Shown: positions 35,891-45,185 of the stretch, piece after piece
How positions within the stretch are numbered: the stretch's first letter is position 1
Layout of the letters: each line of letters begins with the position of its first letter
Sequence record: PV340856.1
Length of the DNA stretch: 64,000 nucleotides
Reading direction: 5' to 3' (one strand)
Position numbers and translations under genes: made by a program
The notes under the pieces: generated by a model
What the model was told of the DNA's origin: nothing
The model's input: only the letters and a program-made list of their open reading frames with translations
Databases searched by the model: none

Positions 35891-35903
35891 AATGGGAGGA
35901 ATT

Positions 35904-36536
35904 ATGTTTGAACTGAATGAATCTCGTAAAACAACAGTAAAAAAAGTCTACGATCATGCTAAAAATGAACTGGGACATGTATGGAGGTATGTAATTACTG
36001 TAGATGATTTTTATAAAAACCCAGATGAAGTGAGGGAGTTTGCTTTAAATTGTACCCCCAAAAAAGATAAAAAGTATACTGGCAATCTTATTGGGTCTAG
36101 AGTTGTTGAAGATGTAAATGGTTTTGATCAGAATTTAAGACAAGTTTTTGAAAAAGCATGTCAATTTGATTTTTGGAATCCAGAGTTCGATGAAACTTTT
36201 TGGAGAGACACAAAATTTATGGTAAATGTCACCACCTCAGATGATATTGAAACCAGATTTAATGAGAGAAAACACACTTATACATTCCATAAAGACTCCA
36301 CCAGTTATAAGTGGGCATCATTAATCTATCTCAATAAAGAAGAGGAGTGTGATGGTGGAACCAACTTTTATGCGTGGATGCCAGAAGATCCTTGCGCTAC
36401 ACCTAGATTGGAATATAGTATAGAAATGAAGTATAATAGAATGGTTTTATATGAGTGTGATCATATGCATGGAGCTGTCCTAAAAAAAGGTATGTTCAGT
36501 GATTTCCCGAGACTAACACAAGTGTTATTCATGTAA
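35904..36536 (+). CDS. 2OG-Fe(II) oxygenase-like protein (DUF6445-like), copy A
   Basis: GGAGG RBS before ATG 35904; VDDFYKNPDEVR, FHKDS (HxD), WASLIYLN, GGTNFY, MKYNRMVLY, HMHG, distal Arg. Confidence 0.7.
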   Translation: MFELNESRKTTVKKVYDHAKNELGHVWRYVITVDDFYKNPDEVREFALNCTPKKDKKYTGNLIGSRVVEDVNGFDQNLRQVFEKACQFDFWNPEFDETFWRDTKFMVNVTTSDDIETRFNERKHTYTFHKDSTSYKWASLIYLNKEEECDGGTNFYAWMPEDPCATPRLEYSIEMKYNRMVLYECDHMHGAVLKKGMFSDFPRLTQVLFM

Positions 36537-36545
36537 TTTTGGTGT

Positions 36546-36553
36546 ACTAAATA
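36546..36553 (+). promoter_or_regulatory. Probable late promoter ACTAAATA heading the modification-enzyme operon
   Basis: Same ACTAAATA variant precedes gp8 and gp19. Confidence 0.6.
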
Positions 36554-36596
36554 AATCAGAATAGATCATTCTTTATCATCCCGTTTGGAGTTGTAT

Positions 36597-37751
36597 ATGA
36601 GACCCAAGGCATTTTTTATTAATGGAGGAGCTGGCAGAGTACTTTGCTCCATCCCTGCATTTGAAAAATATGCAGAAGAACATGATGATTTTATCATTGT
36701 TGCTGAAGGAGGCACTGACTTTTTTAAGGGTCATCCCACCTTAGATGGTAAAGTCTATGATGTTTGGCACAAGAATTTGTTCCAAGAACATCTGAAACAC
36801 AGAGATTGTGTTTCTCCAGAACCATACAGAATGTGGCATTACTACAACCAGAAGTGTAGTTTGACACAGGCTTTTGATATGGAAATCAACGGTCTAGAAG
36901 AACCTAGAGAACTTCCCAAACCAACTCTCAACCTCACTAAGATGGAGGTTATTGCTGGTTACAATATGGTTCAGGAAGTAAAAGCAGTAACTGGTAAAGA
37001 TAAAGTAGTTGTTATCCAACCCTTCGGTAGAGGTGTCGAACAAGTAGGTGACTTTATTGCAGACGCTTCTTCTAGAAGCATGTCTCTAGTAAACACTGTA
37101 GACATTATCAATGACCTTAAAAAGGATTATGGTGTCATTGTCATGTCCGAAATTCAATTCCCTGTAGAAGAAAACGAAGATAAGTCTAAGTATAAAATTG
37201 CAAGACCCCAGATTGAAGACATTCGAGTTTGGGCATCTGTAATTGATGTTGCAGACCACTTCCTAGGTGTGGATAGTATTGGTCAACATATCTGTAAGGC
37301 TTTAGATAAAAAGGCAACCGTTGTAATCGGATCCACATATCCAGTCAATATTTCTTATCCAGAAGATAAGAACTTTGATATCATTGATATTGGTTTGGAT
37401 AAGAGAAAATATTCTCCCATTAGATTGACAATGGATGAAGCTGTTGATCGTTATAATGATCAATCAATGGAAATGTCTAAAGATGATATTAGTAAAGTTC
37501 TAAGTTCTGTTAGAAAAGCTATGGGCAAACCCGCTACTTTTAAGGGAACTTACACTCCTGTTCAACAACAGCAAGATTGTCCTACATGCCCACCAGGAAC
37601 TAAGACAACTCCCGCCGTTGCACCAGGAAGCGCTGCAATGATGCCGCAACAACAATGGAATCAACCACCAGTTATCGCGGAGAAACCCAAAAAACCAAAA
37701 GTAGGATTCAAACAGGAAGTAAAGAATCTCTTAAAGACTGAAACTAAGTGA
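36597..37751 (+). CDS. GT9-family (heptosyltransferase-like) glycosyltransferase
   Basis: N-terminal GGAGRVLCSIPAF...FFKGHPTLD and C-terminal VVVIQPFG...ASVIDVADHFLGVDSIGQHICKALDKKATVVIGST match GT9 motifs; GGAG RBS before ATG 36597. Confidence 0.7.
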   Translation: MRPKAFFINGGAGRVLCSIPAFEKYAEEHDDFIIVAEGGTDFFKGHPTLDGKVYDVWHKNLFQEHLKHRDCVSPEPYRMWHYYNQKCSLTQAFDMEINGLEEPRELPKPTLNLTKMEVIAGYNMVQEVKAVTGKDKVVVIQPFGRGVEQVGDFIADASSRSMSLVNTVDIINDLKKDYGVIVMSEIQFPVEENEDKSKYKIARPQIEDIRVWASVIDVADHFLGVDSIGQHICKALDKKATVVIGSTYPVNISYPEDKNFDIIDIGLDKRKYSPIRLTMDEAVDRYNDQSMEMSKDDISKVLSSVRKAMGKPATFKGTYTPVQQQQDCPTCPPGTKTTPAVAPGSAAMMPQQQWNQPPVIAEKPKKPKVGFKQEVKNLLKTETK

Positions 37752-37760
37752 GGTATTTAA

Positions 37761-39557
37761 ATGTCACAATGGATTGCGGCTATTGCCCGAGGACATAACT
37801 CGGGTCTTTGTCTCCTGAAAGATGGAGAAATTGTATTATCGATTGAGGAAGAAAGACTTTCTAGGAACAAGTATGATGGTGGTCCATATGCTTGTATGAC
37901 CAGAATCCTGGATTTTACTGACAAACTAGACTATCTTGTTATTGCACATACCCAACCACTAAGTGAGGCTGGTCATTGTGATTTTAGTGGAGATCCAATC
38001 TATGTTGCATTAGCAAGAAAGTTGGGGTTGATTGATAGACATGCAAACCCACATGAACATCCACAAGTTATTGACCTAAGTTCTACTCATCATAAACTTC
38101 ATGCAGCATGTGCATTTTATAGATCAGGTTTTGATCGCGCTGCTGCAGTTGTTGTTGATGGTGCAGGCACTTTTATTCCCATGAATATTAATGGGGAAAA
38201 TGAAATGACATGGGAACTAGAGTCCATGTTTAATTGTGAGTATCCATCCGAATTTAAAACTGTCTACAAGCACCAAGGTGGAAGAGGTCCATGGGGATCT
38301 ATTAGATTTGAAGAGTTTAGTAGTGAGAGAGAAGGTGAAGAAGGCACTCATGAGATGATTCTTGATGAGAGCGCTGGCATTACCAAAGCGTATGAAGCGG
38401 TAACTCAATATTGTGGTTGGGCACCTATCGAAGCTGGTAAGACTATGGGTTTATTCCCATATGGAAAACCCAACGATCATATTCCAGATGTATATACCGA
38501 TTATAATGGTACTGCAACATGGAAAACATCTAATAGGGACCTTATTGTACCAACCTATCCTAACGGTGCCGTAGTCAACCAGGGGCGGTTTAAGTTCCTT
38601 CAGACTGACTATGACTATGAAGGAGATAAGACCCTCTTAGAGAACCGTAGAGACATGGCATACGCCATTCAAGTAGAGTCTCAGCAAATGGTTTTGGATC
38701 TTATTCGTAAAGTTGTAGATATGACTGGTCAAACTAATGTTGTATTGACTGGTGGATATGCATTAAATTGTGTTGCTAACTATTGGTATCTTGAACAACT
38801 CAAAGATGAAGGTATTAACTTATTCGTAGAACCAGTAAGTAATGATGCTGGTACTGCAATTGGAGCAGCACTCCTTCAATATCATAGAGTAACGAAAGAT
38901 GCACAAGTCCGTGAACCACTAAAAACCCTTTATACTGGATTTGAATACATGTATGCAACCGATGAAATTGTAGATACTGCAGATAAGTATGAGTCTACGA
39001 GAGTCTTTGAAGCTACAAACAAAGATGTAATTGATCTAATTACCAACAAAAATATTGTTGCTGTTTTCCAAGGTAGATCTGAAGCTGGTCCTAGAGCACT
39101 GGGCAATCGTTCTATTCTATATGATCCTCGCGATCCTGATGGAAAAGACTTTGTTAATAAGGTAAAACGTCGTGAATATTTCCGACCATTCGCTGGGTCA
39201 ATTCTAAAAGAACATGTTCATGAATGGTTTGATCTTCGTGGCATGGATGAAACTCCATTTATGATGTATGCTGTTAAGTGTAAGGAGGGTATTGAGGAAA
39301 AAATTCCTGCAATTATTCACGTTGATGGAACTTGTAGAATCCAAACAGTCACTGAAGAACAGAACAAAAATTATCATGATCTGATTAGAGAGTTCTATGA
39401 ATCTACTGGTTGTCCTATTGTCTTCAACACTTCTTTTAATCTGGGTGGCGAGCCTCTCGTTGAAACACTTGATGACGCTTGCAGAACCCTCGCTAACTCT
39501 GATATTGAATACCTGTACTTGCCCGAATATGGTTTGATGATTGAGGTTAAAAACTAA
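37761..39557 (+). CDS. O-carbamoyltransferase (NodU/CmcH/TobZ family), full length
   Basis: GHNSG.CLLKDGEIV.SIEEERLSRNKYD, HHKLHA, GKTMGLFPYG, GGYALNCVAN, DAGTAIGAA, GRSEAGPRALGNRSIL, KRREYFRPFA, HVDGTCRIQTV, NTSFNLGGEPLV. Confidence 0.93.
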   Translation: MSQWIAAIARGHNSGLCLLKDGEIVLSIEEERLSRNKYDGGPYACMTRILDFTDKLDYLVIAHTQPLSEAGHCDFSGDPIYVALARKLGLIDRHANPHEHPQVIDLSSTHHKLHAACAFYRSGFDRAAAVVVDGAGTFIPMNINGENEMTWELESMFNCEYPSEFKTVYKHQGGRGPWGSIRFEEFSSEREGEEGTHEMILDESAGITKAYEAVTQYCGWAPIEAGKTMGLFPYGKPNDHIPDVYTDYNGTATWKTSNRDLIVPTYPNGAVVNQGRFKFLQTDYDYEGDKTLLENRRDMAYAIQVESQQMVLDLIRKVVDMTGQTNVVLTGGYALNCVANYWYLEQLKDEGINLFVEPVSNDAGTAIGAALLQYHRVTKDAQVREPLKTLYTGFEYMYATDEIVDTADKYESTRVFEATNKDVIDLITNKNIVAVFQGRSEAGPRALGNRSILYDPRDPDGKDFVNKVKRREYFRPFAGSILKEHVHEWFDLRGMDETPFMMYAVKCKEGIEEKIPAIIHVDGTCRIQTVTEEQNKNYHDLIREFYESTGCPIVFNTSFNLGGEPLVETLDDACRTLANSDIEYLYLPEYGLMIEVKN

Positions 39558-39964
39558 TGAAGACAGTTTTTGTTAATGGTACATTTGATATCCTTCATCC
39601 AGGACACATTGAATTATTTCGAGTAGCAAAGTCTCTTGGTGATCGTGTAGTCGTCGCTACTGATAGTGATGCTAAGATCAAAAAAGACAAGGGACCAACT
39701 AAACCGATTAATGATTTGTGTTATCGAGTATCAATGCTTAAGTCAATTAAGTATATTGATGTTGTTCATTATTTCCATGACAGATCTGGTTTGGAGAGTT
39801 TAATTAGGCTCTATAGACCAGATATTCTCCTTTTGGGGGGTGATTGGGAAGGCGGAGATGTTGTCGGTAAAGATCTTGCCAAAGAAGTTAGATTTCTTCC
39901 AAGAGTAGGAGACTACTCATCTAGTGCTGTTATTAATAAAATTCTAACAAATCATTCAACCTGA
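39557..39964 (+). CDS. hldC: Cytidylyltransferase-family nucleotidyltransferase (HldE domain II / HldC-like)
   Basis: GTFDILHPGH (HIGH-type motif), KDKGPTKPIN...RVSML..IKYIDVV, GGDW, YSSSAVINKI; adjacent to an HldE-type kinase. Confidence 0.8.
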   Translation: MKTVFVNGTFDILHPGHIELFRVAKSLGDRVVVATDSDAKIKKDKGPTKPINDLCYRVSMLKSIKYIDVVHYFHDRSGLESLIRLYRPDILLLGGDWEGGDVVGKDLAKEVRFLPRVGDYSSSAVINKILTNHST

Positions 39965-40749
39965 TGAATTATAATATATTAGTTATTGGCGACTCCTGTG
40001 AAGATGAATATATCTATGGAGATTGTTCTAGATTAAATCCAGAGGGACCCATTCCCGTTCTTGATAAAACTTCTACAGAAGTCAAGGCAGGAATGGCAGC
40101 AAATGTTAATGCAAACTTGAAGTCACTTGGAATTAAAACTAATCTAATTACTCAAAAAGAGACAATCAAAAAAACAAGATTTGTTGATAGAAAGAGTAAT
40201 TATCAATTACTTAGAGTTGATTCTACACCTGAGGTGACTCCTTTAAGCGCTCCTCAGGTCAAGATGGCATTCATGCACAGTCGATATGATGCATTAGTAA
40301 TATCCGATTATAATAAGGGGTTTCTTACAATCCAATCAATGCAGACTATTTGTACGTATTTTAGGGGTCCTATTTTCATTGACACTAAAAAGACTAAGTT
40401 ATTCCAACAATCTAATGTTTTTTACAAAATAAACAAGAAGGAATATGATCTACTTGATAGGGAATATATGCCCAGTGATACTAATCTAATCGTCACTTTG
40501 GGAGCAAACGGATGCAAATGGAGTGGTATCCATTTTCAACCAAGAACTGTCAATGTATTTGACGTATGCGGAGCTGGTGATACCTTTCTCGCGGCATTAG
40601 TTTCTGAGTTTCTTGTTACAAAAGATATGCAAAGGTCTATTGATCTTGCAAATAGAGCAGCTTCTATCTCTGTAGAAAACCCAGGAACATATCAACTAAC
40701 TAGATCTGATATTGAGAGGATTTATAATGAGCGAATTCAAACAACCTAA
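39964..40749 (+). CDS. hldA: PfkB-family heptose-7-phosphate kinase (HldE domain I / HldA-like)
   Basis: ILVIGDSCEDEYIYGDCSRLNPEGPIPV, GMAANV, QLLRVD, ISDYNKG, VFDVCGAGDTF, ANRAASISV parallel the E. coli HldE kinase domain. Confidence 0.85.
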   Translation: MNYNILVIGDSCEDEYIYGDCSRLNPEGPIPVLDKTSTEVKAGMAANVNANLKSLGIKTNLITQKETIKKTRFVDRKSNYQLLRVDSTPEVTPLSAPQVKMAFMHSRYDALVISDYNKGFLTIQSMQTICTYFRGPIFIDTKKTKLFQQSNVFYKINKKEYDLLDREYMPSDTNLIVTLGANGCKWSGIHFQPRTVNVFDVCGAGDTFLAALVSEFLVTKDMQRSIDLANRAASISVENPGTYQLTRSDIERIYNERIQTT

Positions 40750-41272
40750 TCCAATATTTTGGATGCCTTTCTTTATCGAACCAATCGATGTCGATAAATT
40801 AGAATTTAAAGAGGAACCAAACTATAAACCAACGTTTATTTCAAGAACTCCAACTACAATGGAGGAGGATTGTCTCACTGATGAATCATACAATTATCTT
40901 GGTAGATTGATTTGGGAATGTATTGGTCAATATACAGAAAAACCTTTTTTCATTGGTTCTGTTTGGCGTAATAAGTATGGAAAGACTGATTGGCAAGATC
41001 CACATATTCATTCTGGAGCTCAATGGAGTTTTGTAATTTACGTGGATGTTGAAGAGTCCAAGACAGTTTTTCTTTCTCCAAGCAGACACGATCAGATGAA
41101 TCAATGGGGATATTTGGGTAACGCATTTCCTATTGATTATTCACCTAAAGTTTCTCCTGGAAATATTATAATTTTCCCATCATTCATCGAACACTTTGTT
41201 CCCCCTGGAAATGAAGGTATAACTATATCAGGTAACATTTATTATGATCAACCCCCTGGAGGACCATGTTAA
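40727..41272 (+). CDS. Putative 2OG-Fe(II) oxygenase (TIGR02466-like)
   Basis: QDPHIHSGAQWSFVIYV...PGNIIIFPSFIEHFV...ITISGNI; start reassigned to ATG 40727. Confidence 0.7.
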   Translation: MSEFKQPNPIFWMPFFIEPIDVDKLEFKEEPNYKPTFISRTPTTMEEDCLTDESYNYLGRLIWECIGQYTEKPFFIGSVWRNKYGKTDWQDPHIHSGAQWSFVIYVDVEESKTVFLSPSRHDQMNQWGYLGNAFPIDYSPKVSPGNIIIFPSFIEHFVPPGNEGITISGNIYYDQPPGGPC

Positions 41273-42423
41273 AAAAACAAGTAGGGTTTAATCTGACACA
41301 TGATTCATCGGTATCAGTTTTAGATGAAGATGGTGACATAGAGCTTTTTGTAGAAGAAGAAAGATTAAGCAGAATTAAACATGATAGCATTCCATTCAAA
41401 GCATGTGATCTTGTTCTTGGTGGACTTACTTTGCAAGAGATTGAAAAATATGAACTGGGTGCAGGTGGATTAATATACAGAGATGAATATGGAGCAACAA
41501 AATTAAATACTTATTATGACCCACTGATTATTAATACTGTTAAATCATTAAAAACTGCCGTACAGGATCGCTCCATTGAAAACTATGAACTAATAAAGAA
41601 AAAATTTGATATATTTTATGAGCATCACTTATTTCATGCTTATTGTGGATTCTATAATTCTGGATTTGATGATGCAGTTACAGTTGTAGTTGATGGTATG
41701 GGAAATTCTGTAATTGATAATACGGGGTCTTTCAACGAAGATACAAATGAGGTTGCTTCAATATTCGATGCATCTTATCCAAAGAATATGAATTATTTGG
41801 GAGGAATGGCTACACATTCTACTCATAGTCCTTGGGAGAGTCAAAATACAAACCATGATGGTAATTGGACATGTGGAATTGGCATGGCATATTCTGCAGT
41901 ATCTGCTTACATGGGTTTTGGACAACTTGGATCTGGAAAACTAATGGGTCTTGCTCCGTATGGTAAAGAAGATCCAAATATTAGACCTTTTCTTCTTGAC
42001 AATGGATTTCATGTAAATTCATCTCTTTTTTATAGGACCATAAATGGATGTAATTTTGTTCCATATGATTATTTGCCTCGATGTGGAGATGGAGAATCTT
42101 TCGATATTGAAAATAATTTTGAAAAATTAGCTAATCTTGCTTGGAGGATTCAAGAAGATTTTCAGAAACACATGTTGAAAATTTTATTGGATGCTCTTAA
42201 AATGACAGGACGTAAAAATATTATTTTAACTGGTGGATGTGCTTTAAATTGTGCTGCAAATTACTGGTATTTGGATAAGTTGCCAAAAGATGTTAAACTA
42301 TATGTGGAGCCCATCAGTACTGATGCTGGAACTAGTCTTGGGATAGCCAAGGCTCAACATTATTCCAAAACTGGTTCCATGAAGAAACACCCACTTAAAA
42401 CCTTATACTTAGGACCCGAATGA
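41266..42423 (+). CDS. Carbamoyltransferase, N-terminal (Kae1-like) domain only
   Basis: THDSSVSV...EEERLSRIKHD, HHLFHA, GKLMGLAPYG, GGCALNCAAN, DAGTSLG; ends KTLYLGPE at the interdomain linker. Confidence 0.85.
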   Translation: MLKKQVGFNLTHDSSVSVLDEDGDIELFVEEERLSRIKHDSIPFKACDLVLGGLTLQEIEKYELGAGGLIYRDEYGATKLNTYYDPLIINTVKSLKTAVQDRSIENYELIKKKFDIFYEHHLFHAYCGFYNSGFDDAVTVVVDGMGNSVIDNTGSFNEDTNEVASIFDASYPKNMNYLGGMATHSTHSPWESQNTNHDGNWTCGIGMAYSAVSAYMGFGQLGSGKLMGLAPYGKEDPNIRPFLLDNGFHVNSSLFYRTINGCNFVPYDYLPRCGDGESFDIENNFEKLANLAWRIQEDFQKHMLKILLDALKMTGRKNIILTGGCALNCAANYWYLDKLPKDVKLYVEPISTDAGTSLGIAKAQHYSKTGSMKKHPLKTLYLGPE

Positions 42424-42746
42424 GATATAACGTGGATATAGACGGCACTATCTGTATTCCTGGAAAGGGAGAAGGTAGATATACTGAAGCTGTACCTATC
42501 CCAGAAAGGATCGCTAAAATAAATGATCTATATATTAAAGGACATCAAATAATCTACCATACTGCTAGAGGTATGGGTACATTTGATAATGATAGAGAAA
42601 AGGCTAAAGAAAAGTATTATGACTTCACCCTAAAACAGCTTCGCAGTTGGGGGTGTATGTTCCACGATCTTTTCCTAGGGAAACCTGCCGCCGACTATTA
42701 CATTGACGACAAAGGAGTAAACTCTGATGATTTCTTCAAGACCTAG
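42420..42746 (+). CDS. HAD-family phosphatase (EcbF/BcbF capsule-biosynthesis type)
   Basis: VDIDGT motif I, HTARG motif II, GKP..DYYIDDK motifs III/IV. Confidence 0.8.
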   Translation: MRYNVDIDGTICIPGKGEGRYTEAVPIPERIAKINDLYIKGHQIIYHTARGMGTFDNDREKAKEKYYDFTLKQLRSWGCMFHDLFLGKPAADYYIDDKGVNSDDFFKT

Positions 42747-43101
42747 AGCAGGGGAACCGATCAAATTCGTATCCAAAGGATGGGGATATGAAAAATGGAT
42801 CGTTAACTCCGAACAATATTGTGGTAAACTCCTTTTCATTGCAAAAGGAAAACAATGTTCTTGGCACTTTCATAAAAAGAAAGACGAAGTTTTCTACGTC
42901 CAAAGTGGAAAAATTAAAATCTACTATGGATGGGACGACAATATTGAGATGGCTAGTGTATCTGTCTTGGAACCAGGAGATAAGTTTCATGTTCCTATTG
43001 GAATGAAACATAGAATGTATGGTCTTTCAGATACTGAACTATTTGAGTTTAGTACAGAACACTTTGATGAAGACAGTAATAGAATTCAACCTGGGGATTG
43101 A
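42727..43101 (+). CDS. Cupin sugar(-phosphate) isomerase-like protein
   Basis: KGWGYEKWI...CSWHFHKKKDEVFYVQSG...PGDKFHVPIGMKHR: cupin HxH..E..H metal site of mannose-6-phosphate/D-lyxose isomerase-like proteins. Confidence 0.75.
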   Translation: MISSRPRAGEPIKFVSKGWGYEKWIVNSEQYCGKLLFIAKGKQCSWHFHKKKDEVFYVQSGKIKIYYGWDDNIEMASVSVLEPGDKFHVPIGMKHRMYGLSDTELFEFSTEHFDEDSNRIQPGD

Positions 43102-43706
43102 TGAAAGCAGAAAAGATAACTGACCTGATTGTGGTTTTGAAAAATCACATTCCAGATGATACCTGTGATGAAATACTAGAATGGTTTGAATTAAATAAAC
43201 ATCTACAAACAGATGGATGTGTTTATAGCACAGAAGGAGATCAAGATAAAGGTGCCAAAGTTGACAAAGATTTTAAGAATGCTATTCAAACTCTAGTTCC
43301 TCCAGGAGCATCTATCTCAGACAAAATGACAGAGATCACCATGTCTGCCTTCAGAGAAGCTGGTTCTAGATATCCAGTTCCAGAAAATAGTATGACCTTA
43401 AATGATTATTGCGTTAGAGTATATCCCAAAGACGAAGGGATATTTAAGACTCATGTGGATCAACACGCATTTGGAACCGTAAGTAGATTATTTGCTTGCA
43501 TTATGTATCTTAATGATGTTGAGATTGGTGGGGAAACTGAATTTCCAGACTGGAACATAGCAGTAAAACCAGAGAAAGGAAAAGTTTTATTGTTCCCATG
43601 CAATTATCTTTTCAAACATAAAGGCAATGTTCCTATCTCAAACGAAAAATATATTGCTACAAACTTCATTAACTTTATGATGCAAGATATTCCTCTAGTG
43701 TCTTGA
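43101..43706 (+). CDS. Prolyl-4-hydroxylase-like 2OG-Fe(II) oxygenase
   Basis: KTHVDQ (HxD), RLFACIMYLNDVEIGGETEF, VKPEKGKVLLFP, HKGNVPISNEKY; TGATG overlap with the cupin stop. Confidence 0.85.
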   Translation: MKAEKITDLIVVLKNHIPDDTCDEILEWFELNKHLQTDGCVYSTEGDQDKGAKVDKDFKNAIQTLVPPGASISDKMTEITMSAFREAGSRYPVPENSMTLNDYCVRVYPKDEGIFKTHVDQHAFGTVSRLFACIMYLNDVEIGGETEFPDWNIAVKPEKGKVLLFPCNYLFKHKGNVPISNEKYIATNFINFMMQDIPLVS

Positions 43707-44478
43707 GTCTATAATTCAACCATTCCATATCTGCACAGGTGTAGTCTTGATACTTACCTTTCAGATGATCAGGGAAAGGAATCATTTCGATTTCTCCCCC
43801 TTCTTTTTTAGCAATTAACTCTGCAACTCTCTGGAATGACATTGGTTTACCAGTTCCGATGTCATAGATTCCACTAGGAGCATCATTATTCATGACAATA
43901 TTGACTATATCATCTACACATACAAAGTCTCGATAAAACTTATCGGATCCTTCAAATAATTTTAGTTTTCCTGTCTCTTTAATCTGTTTAGTAAACTTTG
44001 AAACGGGACTTGCTTGATCTCCCTTATGGTCTTCACCAGTTCCATATACATTAAAATATCTAAATCCTTGGATACTCTCAAACCGATCTAGATTGTCCAA
44101 TACGTAATAATCTATGATTAGTTTTGAAATTGCATATTGATTTAAGGGATTTATTTTTCTACATTCTTTTGTTTGATTGCCATACACAGATGCTGAAGAC
44201 GCATACTTAATAGGAATCTTGTGTTCTATCGCATGAGAGAAGAGATGAGCAGTAAAGGTTTGGTTGTAGTGGGAGATCTTCATCCAGTTTTTTTCTGTAG
44301 TGGATGAGATTGCTCCATTATGAATGATTAGATCTACATTTTCCCAACCATTGAATTTAGCCATGAAATCCCATGCATTATCCATATCAATACCGATAAC
44401 GTCACGTTCTGCTTCATTCTCTAGGTATTTTAGGAAGTGAGATCCAATGAATCCCTTATATCCAGTAATTAAAATCAT
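43675..44478 (-). CDS. hldD: ADP-L-glycero-D-manno-heptose 6-epimerase
   Basis: ITGYKGFIG, HNGAISSTTE, YASSASVYG, PLNQYAISK, GFRYFNVYG, HKG, LFEGS..FYRDFV, YDIGTG, IPFPDHLKGKYQ closely parallel E. coli HldD. Confidence 0.9.
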   Translation of the reverse strand: MILITGYKGFIGSHFLKYLENEAERDVIGIDMDNAWDFMAKFNGWENVDLIIHNGAISSTTEKNWMKISHYNQTFTAHLFSHAIEHKIPIKYASSASVYGNQTKECRKINPLNQYAISKLIIDYYVLDNLDRFESIQGFRYFNVYGTGEDHKGDQASPVSKFTKQIKETGKLKLFEGSDKFYRDFVCVDDIVNIVMNNDAPSGIYDIGTGKPMSFQRVAELIAKKEGGEIEMIPFPDHLKGKYQDYTCADMEWLNYRLKTLEEYLAS

Positions 44479-45185
44479 CAGTATATTATCCTTGGAATAG
44501 GTAGAAATATTGATTGAGCGAGTCTATACACCTGTTGATCAAAGTGACCTGGATGTTGATATACACCATGAAGAAAATTATCTGGATATACAATCAATCT
44601 ATTGTATTTCATTTCTGCTAAGTGAACAAGTTCCCAAGGACCAACACTATCTCTTACAATATCTTCGTTCCAGATTCCAGATTGGTTTACATCAACACAA
44701 CTCATTCCCTTATAAGTATAAAATCCAGTGCCACCATGACATTCTTCTGGCGTGTTTAAATAAATTACACCTGCCCAACCCCTAACTAAATTTTTACTAT
44801 CTATAGGAGAATCTACGTGTGGAATAAGTACTTGATCTGATGCAGTTACATTTACCGAGAATGTAAGTTGTTTGCATCCAAAGACAAATCGTTCTTCTTC
44901 TTCTTTTGACAATCCATAAACTGATTTGGCTATGTCAATCCAGATTGGAACTAAATGATCAAGATCAAAATTTGCACTAACTCTACCACCTGGAACTGCT
45001 CCACAAATTCTTCGATTAAAAGTTGGAGGAATTCTTAGAGCCAAATCTCGAACCTGATCGGGATTTTTATAGAAGTTATCGATGTATACGATTGGTTTTT
45101 CTTCCCACCCCATTAACTCTACTCTTGCATCCAATTCATCATTGATTGCAAAGACTTCGGATTCATTTATAAAGTACTTTTTCAT
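44478..45185 (-). CDS. 2OG-Fe(II) oxygenase-like protein (DUF6445-like), copy B
   Basis: IDNFYKNPDQVR, PHVDS, WAGVIYLN, GGTGFY, MKYNRLIVY, FLHG, YRL; paralogue of 35904..36536; TGATG coupling to hldD. Confidence 0.7.
   Translation of the reverse strand: MKKYFINESEVFAINDELDARVELMGWEEKPIVYIDNFYKNPDQVRDLALRIPPTFNRRICGAVPGGRVSANFDLDHLVPIWIDIAKSVYGLSKEEEERFVFGCKQLTFSVNVTASDQVLIPHVDSPIDSKNLVRGWAGVIYLNTPEECHGGTGFYTYKGMSCVDVNQSGIWNEDIVRDSVGPWELVHLAEMKYNRLIVYPDNFLHGVYQHPGHFDQQVYRLAQSIFLPIPRIIY

Follow-up and report, generated by a model that had tools for sequence, protein, structure and literature searches.

How could a phage make an activated heptose when only three of the five enzymes of the pathway can be recognized among its genes? 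This question is raised by a 64,000-nucleotide stretch of sequence record PV340856.1 (hereafter, the window), which originates, at 100% identity, from Synechococcus phage Sf-FS3 (216,248 bp; host WH8102). A previous reading based on the sequence alone (the sequence-only reading) had recognized a heptose kinase, a nucleotidyltransferase, and a 6-epimerase in a sugar gene cluster of this window, found no SIS-fold GmhA isomerase or GmhB-type phosphatase anywhere in the window, and suggested that a small cupin protein and a different HAD phosphatase encoded in the same operon act in their stead. On balance, we favor the view that the operon at 36.6-44.5 kb specifies a self-contained nucleoside diphosphate (NDP)-heptose pathway, common to many T4-like cyanophages, in which the HAD and the cupin would replace GmhB and GmhA, respectively. 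Non-orthologous replacement, as originally suggested, is strongly indicated for the HAD by its motifs, its homology to the phage proteins AfhF and gp51, and its fusions, and is probable for the cupin in view of its co-occurrence, fusions, and distribution.

A predicted heptose pathway with two substituted enzymes

The Gram-negative pathway to ADP-L-glycero-beta-D-manno-heptose (GmhA, HldA/HldE, GmhB, HldC/HldE, and HldD) comprises the same five steps that are proposed here for Sf-FS3, and the phage kinase, nucleotidyltransferase, and epimerase are homologous to their bacterial counterparts (Table 1). The phage system differs in lacking the SIS-type GmhA and GmhB, in its shortened kinase and epimerase, and in the carbamoyltransferases and 2-oxoglutarate (2OG) oxygenases attached to it. 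The module would represent a variant of the known heptose pathway with two substituted enzymes.

In the first step, we infer that the His/His/Glu/His metal site of the cupin isomerizes sedoheptulose-7-phosphate to D-glycero-D-manno-heptose-7-phosphate, which would be the C7 counterpart of the conversion of fructose-6-phosphate to mannose-6-phosphate. Sedoheptulose-7-phosphate is an intermediate of the Calvin cycle and the pentose phosphate pathway; moreover, the transaldolase that the sequence-only reading expected in a T4-like cyanophage is indeed encoded in the Sf-FS3 genome as talC, so the phage handles this sugar phosphate itself. Judging by homology, the HldA-like kinase would then phosphorylate C1. 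Homology to a characterized analogue, together with gene fusions, suggests that the small HAD subsequently removes the 7-phosphate via its Asp6 nucleophile. The HldC-like transferase, again going by homology, would form the NDP-heptose, and the homologous HldD-like short-chain dehydrogenase/reductase (SDR) would epimerize C6. A transferase resembling glycosyltransferase family 9 (GT9) and the carbamoyltransferases could then use the sugar on an acceptor.

The presence of the three homologous enzymes is borne out by profile searches. The heptose family is the top-scoring one in each case: the kinase, with its GAGD motif intact, scores 141.6 bits against TIGR02198 (equivalog cutoff 345); the nucleotidyltransferase, in which the HxGH motif reads HPGH, scores 112.4 bits against TIGR02199 (cutoff 181.5); and the SDR, with both GxxGxxG and YxxxK present, scores 229.7 bits against TIGR02197 (cutoff 274.6). 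Homologues of the nucleotidyltransferase at more than 50% identity were found only in module-bearing cyanophages.

Absence of GmhA and GmhB and supply from the host

Six-frame searches of the full 216,248-bp record with SIS_2, TIGR00441 (gmhA), TIGR00213 (GmhB), and TIGR01656 returned zero matches at E-value limits of 1 to 10, and control genomes did match. The absence first noted in the window thus holds for the entire phage genome. For SIS_2, it also holds for eight further phage records, including those of P-SSM2, S-SSM7, P-TIM68, S-T4, S-SM2, Bellamy, and S-CAM1. LR756501, a 735-kb uncultured phage with an HldE-like kinase, contains neither an SIS protein nor the cupin.

Supply of the missing steps from the host, which the sequence-only reading had doubted, indeed appears doubtful and would be unreliable, judging by host gene content. 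Neither gmhA nor GmhB was found in WH7803, the host strain of both S-CAM1 and S-T4, and among the sampled picocyanobacteria a gmhA-like gene is present in only 45 of 201 genomes and GmhB in 32 of 201. As the earlier reading had also noted for characterized marine Synechococcus, the lipopolysaccharide (LPS) of WH8102 has been reported to be without heptose (PMC4515613).

The small HAD as a putative GmhB analogue

Since GmhB is itself a member of the HAD superfamily, its replacement in Sf-FS3 would be by a distant paralogue. The 108-aa phage protein has no Pfam match. Its match to the NCBIfam model TIGR01689 (EcbF-BcbF; E = 3.8e-8) reaches 33.3 bits, far under the 162-bit cutoff, which makes the protein a relative rather than a member of that subfamily; the term "EcbF-type" given to it previously is therefore appropriate only as a loose family label. 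Two HAD-fold structures in the Protein Data Bank (PDB), 9iqw (E = 3.9e-9) and 1xpj (E = 7.4e-5), match the protein, and gp51 of phage RB69 is 34% identical (E = 4e-14), its alignment reading the same as that of 9iqw. Residues D6, D8, T48, K88, D92, and D97 are invariant among 13 phage and cellular homologues, RB69 gp51 included, and all HAD catalytic motifs are kept.

A 2026 study (PMC13326640) describes AfhF of phage HY126, which corresponds to gp51 of RB69, as a Mg-dependent phosphatase acting on arabinofuranose-1,5-bisphosphate to give the 1-phosphate; in that arabinose route, an SIS isomerase, a kinase, the phosphatase, and a transferase follow one another. The Sf-FS3 protein belongs to the same capless HAD family as AfhF and gp51 (PDB 9iqw; related structure 1xpj), which serve the UDP-arabinose route of DNA hypermodification, and would occupy the same place in an isomerase-kinase-phosphatase-transferase route. 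It differs in its proposed substrate (heptose 1,7-bisphosphate), in having heptose enzymes as partners, and in being paired with a cupin instead of an SIS isomerase. Across phages, the small HAD family was found in 393 records, mostly of Tevenvirinae, in which it lies beside a large arabinose kinase/transferase gene.

Cellular relatives connect this family to heptose more directly. The small HAD is present in 11 of the 201 sampled picocyanobacterial genomes. In three picocyanobacteria, it is fused to GmhA in proteins of about 300-317 aa (L116:16728-17654 in G133; G026:C23; G009:C1), and one such 309-aa frame matches SIS_2 at 1.4e-19. In four further loci (genomes G138, G083, G112, and G040), a fusion of the HAD to an HldC-like nucleotidyltransferase lies within HddA-SIS-HAD::nucleotidyltransferase-SDR operons that contain no other phosphatase; by gene content, this picocyanobacterial route uses the mini-HAD in place of GmhB. 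Both kinds of locus share with the phage module the small HAD (42-53% identity) and the HldC-like transferase, but their isomerase is an SIS protein and the cupin is absent from them. Taken together, the motifs, the homology to AfhF/gp51, and the fusions make the assignment of the phage protein as a heptose-1,7-bisphosphate phosphatase a well-supported one, in which we have considerable confidence. A role as a phosphomutase that bypasses the kinase was rejected, given that the kinase is always present.

This assignment bears on a gap in a previous cross-kingdom survey. According to the accounts of it in PMC11461863 and PMC11573728, Tang et al. (2024) found that viruses encode functional homologues of the heptose isomerase, kinase, and transferase, with the phosphatase absent from viruses. 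The small HAD could be this missing phosphatase, and the cupin would be undetectable in a GmhA homology search.

The genomic settings of the small HAD in other phages are also informative. In RB69 and IME523 (L132:2313-4366 and L133:1709-4599), it directly follows a 560-aa arabinose kinase/transferase gene and lies near an SIS arabinose-5-phosphate isomerase and the DNA polymerase, an arrangement that matches the published arabinosyl-cytosine DNA modification locus. S-SM2 and Bellamy (L006:754-4370 and L007:156-3763) have a second copy, whose neighbors encode an AraD-like class II aldolase/epimerase, a protein of 370 aa, and a nucleotidyltransferase-containing protein of 522-524 aa. This second locus may encode a pentose-type NDP-sugar pathway; a BLAST comparison with RB69 gp52:53 found no similarity.

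The cupin as a probable GmhA analogue

Both cupin metal motifs, G(X)5HXH(X)3-4E(X)6G and G(X)5PXG(X)2H(X)3, can be read from the sequence of the second protein, which scores 35.9 bits against Cupin_2 (Pfam cutoff 27.2); 20 homologues share H47, H49, K52, E54, and H95 without exception. The AlphaFold2 model is all-beta, with a pLDDT (predicted local distance difference test) score of 91. A single small barrel, the His/His/Glu/His site, and the HxHxxKxE motif are shared with cupin aldose-ketose isomerases, namely the type II/archaeal mini phosphomannose isomerases (7zvm and 7zvy; PF01050) and the D-lyxose and L-ribose isomerases (2y0o, 7nzo, and 3ww1; PF07385), the motif being common to the latter two activities. 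In contrast to these enzymes, the phage cupin falls under both Pfam cutoffs (15.9 against a threshold of 20.8 for Lyx_isomer, PF07385, and likewise below that of MannoseP_isomer, PF01050), and its putative substrate is sedoheptulose-7-phosphate. Two other members of the cupin family, P0166 and P0168, pass the Lyx_isomer cutoff, P0166 that of MannoseP_isomer as well, and related protein-atlas clusters carry the same families. Structural searching (Foldseek, then VIA-align) left hundreds of cupins, up to about a thousand, tied at Z 14-16 and did not separate functions; within the tie, the highest identity (20-24%) belongs to D-lyxose isomerases and small phosphomannose isomerases of Thermococcus. 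The modeled fold is compatible with an isomerase but not decisive.

A more specific association emerges from the distribution of the gene. By tblastn, the cupin is found in 35 of 50,697 phage records, all from cyanophages or uncultured marine viruses. The gene is also present in each of the 12 isolate cyanophages that have an HldA-like kinase, and 31 of the 35 phage records that contain this kinase represent the same cupin-carrying cyanophages. The genes follow the same order in P-SSM2, S-CAM1, and S-SSM7 and are shuffled in P-TIM68, S-SM2, and S-T4; kinase, transferase, HAD, and cupin form the invariable core, which the SDR usually accompanies. Eighty cupin loci from IMG/VR, which are mutual close relatives and not independent samples, contain the HAD in 73 cases, the SDR in 68, the kinase in 64, the transferase in 60, and an SIS protein in none. 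When only the 26 loci flanked by 4 kb or more on each side are considered, the kinase and the nucleotidyltransferase are present in all 26, the HAD in 25, and an SIS protein again in none. In 80 viral loci that encode a true GmhA, a heptose kinase was counted 34 times, a phosphatase 25 times (the small HAD in 14, GmhB in 11), and a relative of the cupin only twice. At least 585 IMG/VR stretches carry the cupin and 160 carry GmhA, different search patterns lying behind the two counts. Picocyanobacterial cellular cupins at 30-35% identity are not near heptose genes, the single strong match among these genomes (G067) proved to lie on a phage contig, and several divergent representatives of the family sit on contigs of less than 1 kb, which offer no usable context.

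The cupin is not tied to one type of kinase. In Bellamy, its neighbors are an HddA-type GHMP kinase (7e-83) on one side and an HddC-type transferase on the other, followed by a GMD-like dehydratase and an RmlD-like reductase, and the locus looks like a GDP-6-deoxyheptose route. Because HddA/HddC occur there and HldA/HldC elsewhere, the cupin accompanies two non-homologous kinase/transferase pairs, and the steps that the two routes have in common are those of the isomerase and the phosphatase. Natural fusions, retrieved in a profile search of 1.8 billion proteins, join the cupin to the same partners: kinase-cupin, cupin-kinase, nucleotidyltransferase-cupin (four), and HAD-cupin. Kinase-cupin fusions occur in some cellular genomes, and no gmhA was found in the genome holding such a fusion.

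Its co-occurrence with heptose genes, its fusions, its near-exclusive distribution with respect to SIS-type GmhA, and its affinity to isomerase-type cupins lead us to regard the cupin as a likely sedoheptulose-7-phosphate isomerase, although with appreciably less confidence than we attach to the role of the HAD. By extension, we lean toward the view that small metal cupins of this kind constitute an unrecognized sedoheptulose-7-phosphate isomerase family and that, together with the AfhF-like mini-HAD, they would form a GmhA/GmhB-independent route, the prevailing version of the pathway among marine viruses. Such a role for a cupin was not found in the literature searched, a search limited to one collection.

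Alternative roles for the cupin and the module

Several observations weigh against this interpretation. Two IMG/VR contigs (L281 and L288) hold an HddA-like kinase and a true GmhA, and about 5 kb away lies a nucleotidyltransferase-cupin pair with a cupin of 40-45% identity; because a genuine GmhA is present, this cupin would be redundant as an isomerase. No recognizable phosphatase lies within 10 kb on either contig. On another contig (G067:C3), a 57% identical cupin adjoins a DegT aminotransferase and a radical SAM gene, with the kinase, transferase, and HAD elsewhere, and one 43% identical homologue has no heptose genes nearby. The cupin domain of CapF, a C3 epimerase, ties structurally with the isomerase cupins at Z 14-16. 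None of the kinase, transferase, and epimerase reaches its NCBIfam equivalog cutoff, so the sugar itself is a matter of prediction, and the kinship of the 80 IMG/VR loci lessens the force of their agreement. More generally, the roles of the module enzymes, as well as the occurrence of heptose in infected cells or virions, are predictions.

The contigs concerned are unusual in other respects. L281 and L288 are marine and myophage-like; genes for NifU, an IscA-like protein, ferredoxin, and a chaperonin are interspersed there with those for HddA, GmhA, and the nucleotidyltransferase-cupin pair. G067:C3 (L117-L123) is a T4-like phage contig of 130 kb that encodes a UvsX-like recombinase and shows structural-gene matches to the window; as it was binned in a picocyanobacterial species-representative genome, gene-presence counts for that cellular genome are affected.

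Could the cupin instead act after activation of the sugar? An NDP-(keto)heptose might be its substrate, with the cupin working as a C3/C5 epimerase or keto-isomerase similar to the CapF cupin domain, FdtA/WbuC, or the Campylobacter heptose epimerases, with the isomerase supplied by the host or by an unrecognized protein. The position of the CapF domain among the top structural ties is in keeping with this idea, as are weak matches to the WbuC and FdtA profiles, the joint presence of GmhA and cupin on L281 and L288, the DegT aminotransferase beside the cupin on G067:C3, the near-constant proximity of the SDR, and the fact that the nucleotidyltransferase-cupin pair is the commonest fusion. However, the pathway would be substrate-less in hosts such as WH7803, which have no GmhA, and the beta-type modules of the window and P-SSM2 encode neither a 4,6-dehydratase nor a C4 oxidase that could provide a keto intermediate. 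Furthermore, the cupin occurs in both ADP-type and GDP-type routes, such that an enzyme acting at this stage would need to tolerate differences in both nucleotide and anomer. No match to the RmlC-type NDP-sugar 3,5-epimerases (PF00908) was obtained at E<=0.01, the nearest profiles being those of aldose-ketose isomerases, and no SDR-cupin fusion was found in the search that yielded the other fusions. We consider action after activation a serious alternative, though a rather unlikely one.

It is less probable still that the module activates a sugar other than D-glycero-D-manno-heptose, with its enzymes acting on another ketose or aldose phosphate according to the logic of the arabinose route. 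The sub-cutoff scores of the three presumed orthologues, two of which are shortened, leave room for such a shift, and the same HAD family serves the arabinose pathway of Tevenvirinae. Nevertheless, the heptose family scores best for each enzyme, the partners of the cupin in Bellamy are HddA and HddC, the module is linked to a gene resembling those of GT9 heptosyltransferases, and genuine GmhA is the fusion partner of the HAD's relatives in cells.

Finally, the "cysteine dioxygenase" name of phrog_7851, the dioxygenase and decarboxylase cupins among the structural ties, and the several 2OG oxygenases of the cluster could suggest that the cupin is an oxygenase or other non-isomerase metal enzyme, one more auxiliary gene of oxygenase type, but this is very improbable, as every adequately flanked cupin locus contains a heptose kinase, fusions link the cupin to the kinase, nucleotidyltransferase, and HAD, and no cysteine dioxygenase profile matched at the thresholds used.

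Gene names and significance

If small cupins do catalyze the isomerization of sedoheptulose-7-phosphate, the first committed step of heptose biosynthesis would gain a new enzyme family, one that is invisible to GmhA-based homology surveys. The database names of both proteins are wrong. The HAD is named "phosphoheptose isomerase" in GenBank, RefSeq, and PHROGs (phrog_1238), across about 390 phage records, and the fusions found in picocyanobacteria probably explain this name; the cupin (phrog_7851) is named either "cysteine dioxygenase" or "putative nucleotidyltransferase." A "phosphoheptose isomerase (gmhA)" figures among the cyanophage or marine auxiliary genes that are reported in genome notes and virome papers. 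In Sf-FS3 and its relatives, the gene so named is, by its homology, the HAD, and virome counts of "gmhA" as an auxiliary gene may include it. The label used across marine virus studies would thus belong to a phosphatase. A further question is why abundant ocean phages would make a carbamoylated heptose when LPS of the WH8102 type is without heptose, and whether its acceptor is the host envelope, the virion, or something else.

Gene order and neighboring genes

Open reading frames (ORFs) on the + strand are densely packed over 36.6-43.7 kb, and two convergent genes follow on the - strand, among them that of the HldD-like epimerase, which is convergent to the + strand operon (Table 1). The HAD and cupin ORFs overlap by 20 nt, in line with the coupling of these two genes that the sequence-only reading had described. 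Beyond the cluster lie the neck genes gp13/14, gp15, and the terminase.

Table 1. Features of the sugar gene cluster of Sf-FS3 (window coordinates; functions are predicted)
Feature	Coordinates	Strand	Evidence
GT9-like putative heptosyltransferase, 388 aa (phrog_8954); likely NDP-heptose consumer	36585..37751	+	Weak NCBIfam matches to heptosyltransferase III/RfaQ
NodU/NolO-like carbamoyltransferase, full-length, 598 aa	37761..39557	+	Carbam_trans_N and Carbam_trans_C; phrog_1601
HldC-like heptose-1-phosphate nucleotidyltransferase, 135 aa	39557..39964	+	TIGR02199 rfaE_dom_II, 1.5e-32 (below cutoff); HPGH
Short HldA-like (PfkB) heptose-7-phosphate kinase, 261 aa	39964..40749	+	TIGR02198 rfaE_dom_I, 3e-41 (below cutoff); GAGD
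2OG-Fe(II) oxygenase, inserted in module	40712..41272	+	PF13759
Carbamoyltransferase paralogue, N-terminal domain only, 385 aa	41266..42423	+	Carbam_trans_N only
Small capless HAD phosphatase, 108 aa; proposed GmhB analogue	42420..42746	+	PDB 9iqw/1xpj, RB69 gp51, motifs, fusions
Metal-site cupin, 124 aa; proposed GmhA analogue	42727..43101	+	Cupin_2, motifs, AlphaFold2 model, co-occurrence, fusions
2OG-Fe(II) oxygenase	43098..43706	+	PF13640; same position in S-SSM7
Short HldD-like SDR, 267 aa; putative NDP-heptose 6-epimerase	43675..44478	-	TIGR02197, 4.7e-68 (below cutoff); GxxGxxG, YxxxK
DUF6445 protein, beside HldD-like SDR	44478	-	

The protein-atlas neighbors of the 388-aa glycosyltransferase are viral clusters named ADP-heptose:LPS heptosyltransferase, in which 22% of the members carry PF01075, and the gene is found together with the carbamoyltransferase in some of the cyanophages that have the module; the downstream glycosyltransferases of P-TIM68, S-SM2, and S-T4 differ. 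The full carbamoyltransferase occupies the same position in P-SSM2 and S-CAM1, and the pair that it forms with its N-terminal-only paralogue is also present in S-SSM7. The oxygenase inserted in the module has no counterpart at that position in P-SSM2 or S-CAM1.

Five oxygenase-type genes (2OG-Fe(II) or DUF6445) are distributed across 35892-45185, at 35892, 40712, 43098, and 44478 (- strand), plus a paralogue of the one at 35892. In P-TIM68 (L004:2941-4086) and on the contig of P0140, a transketolase-like gene (E1_dh and Transket_pyr; ~380-400 aa) and a Zn alcohol dehydrogenase gene lie directly upstream of the heptose kinase, and their products might supply or alter the seven-carbon precursor.

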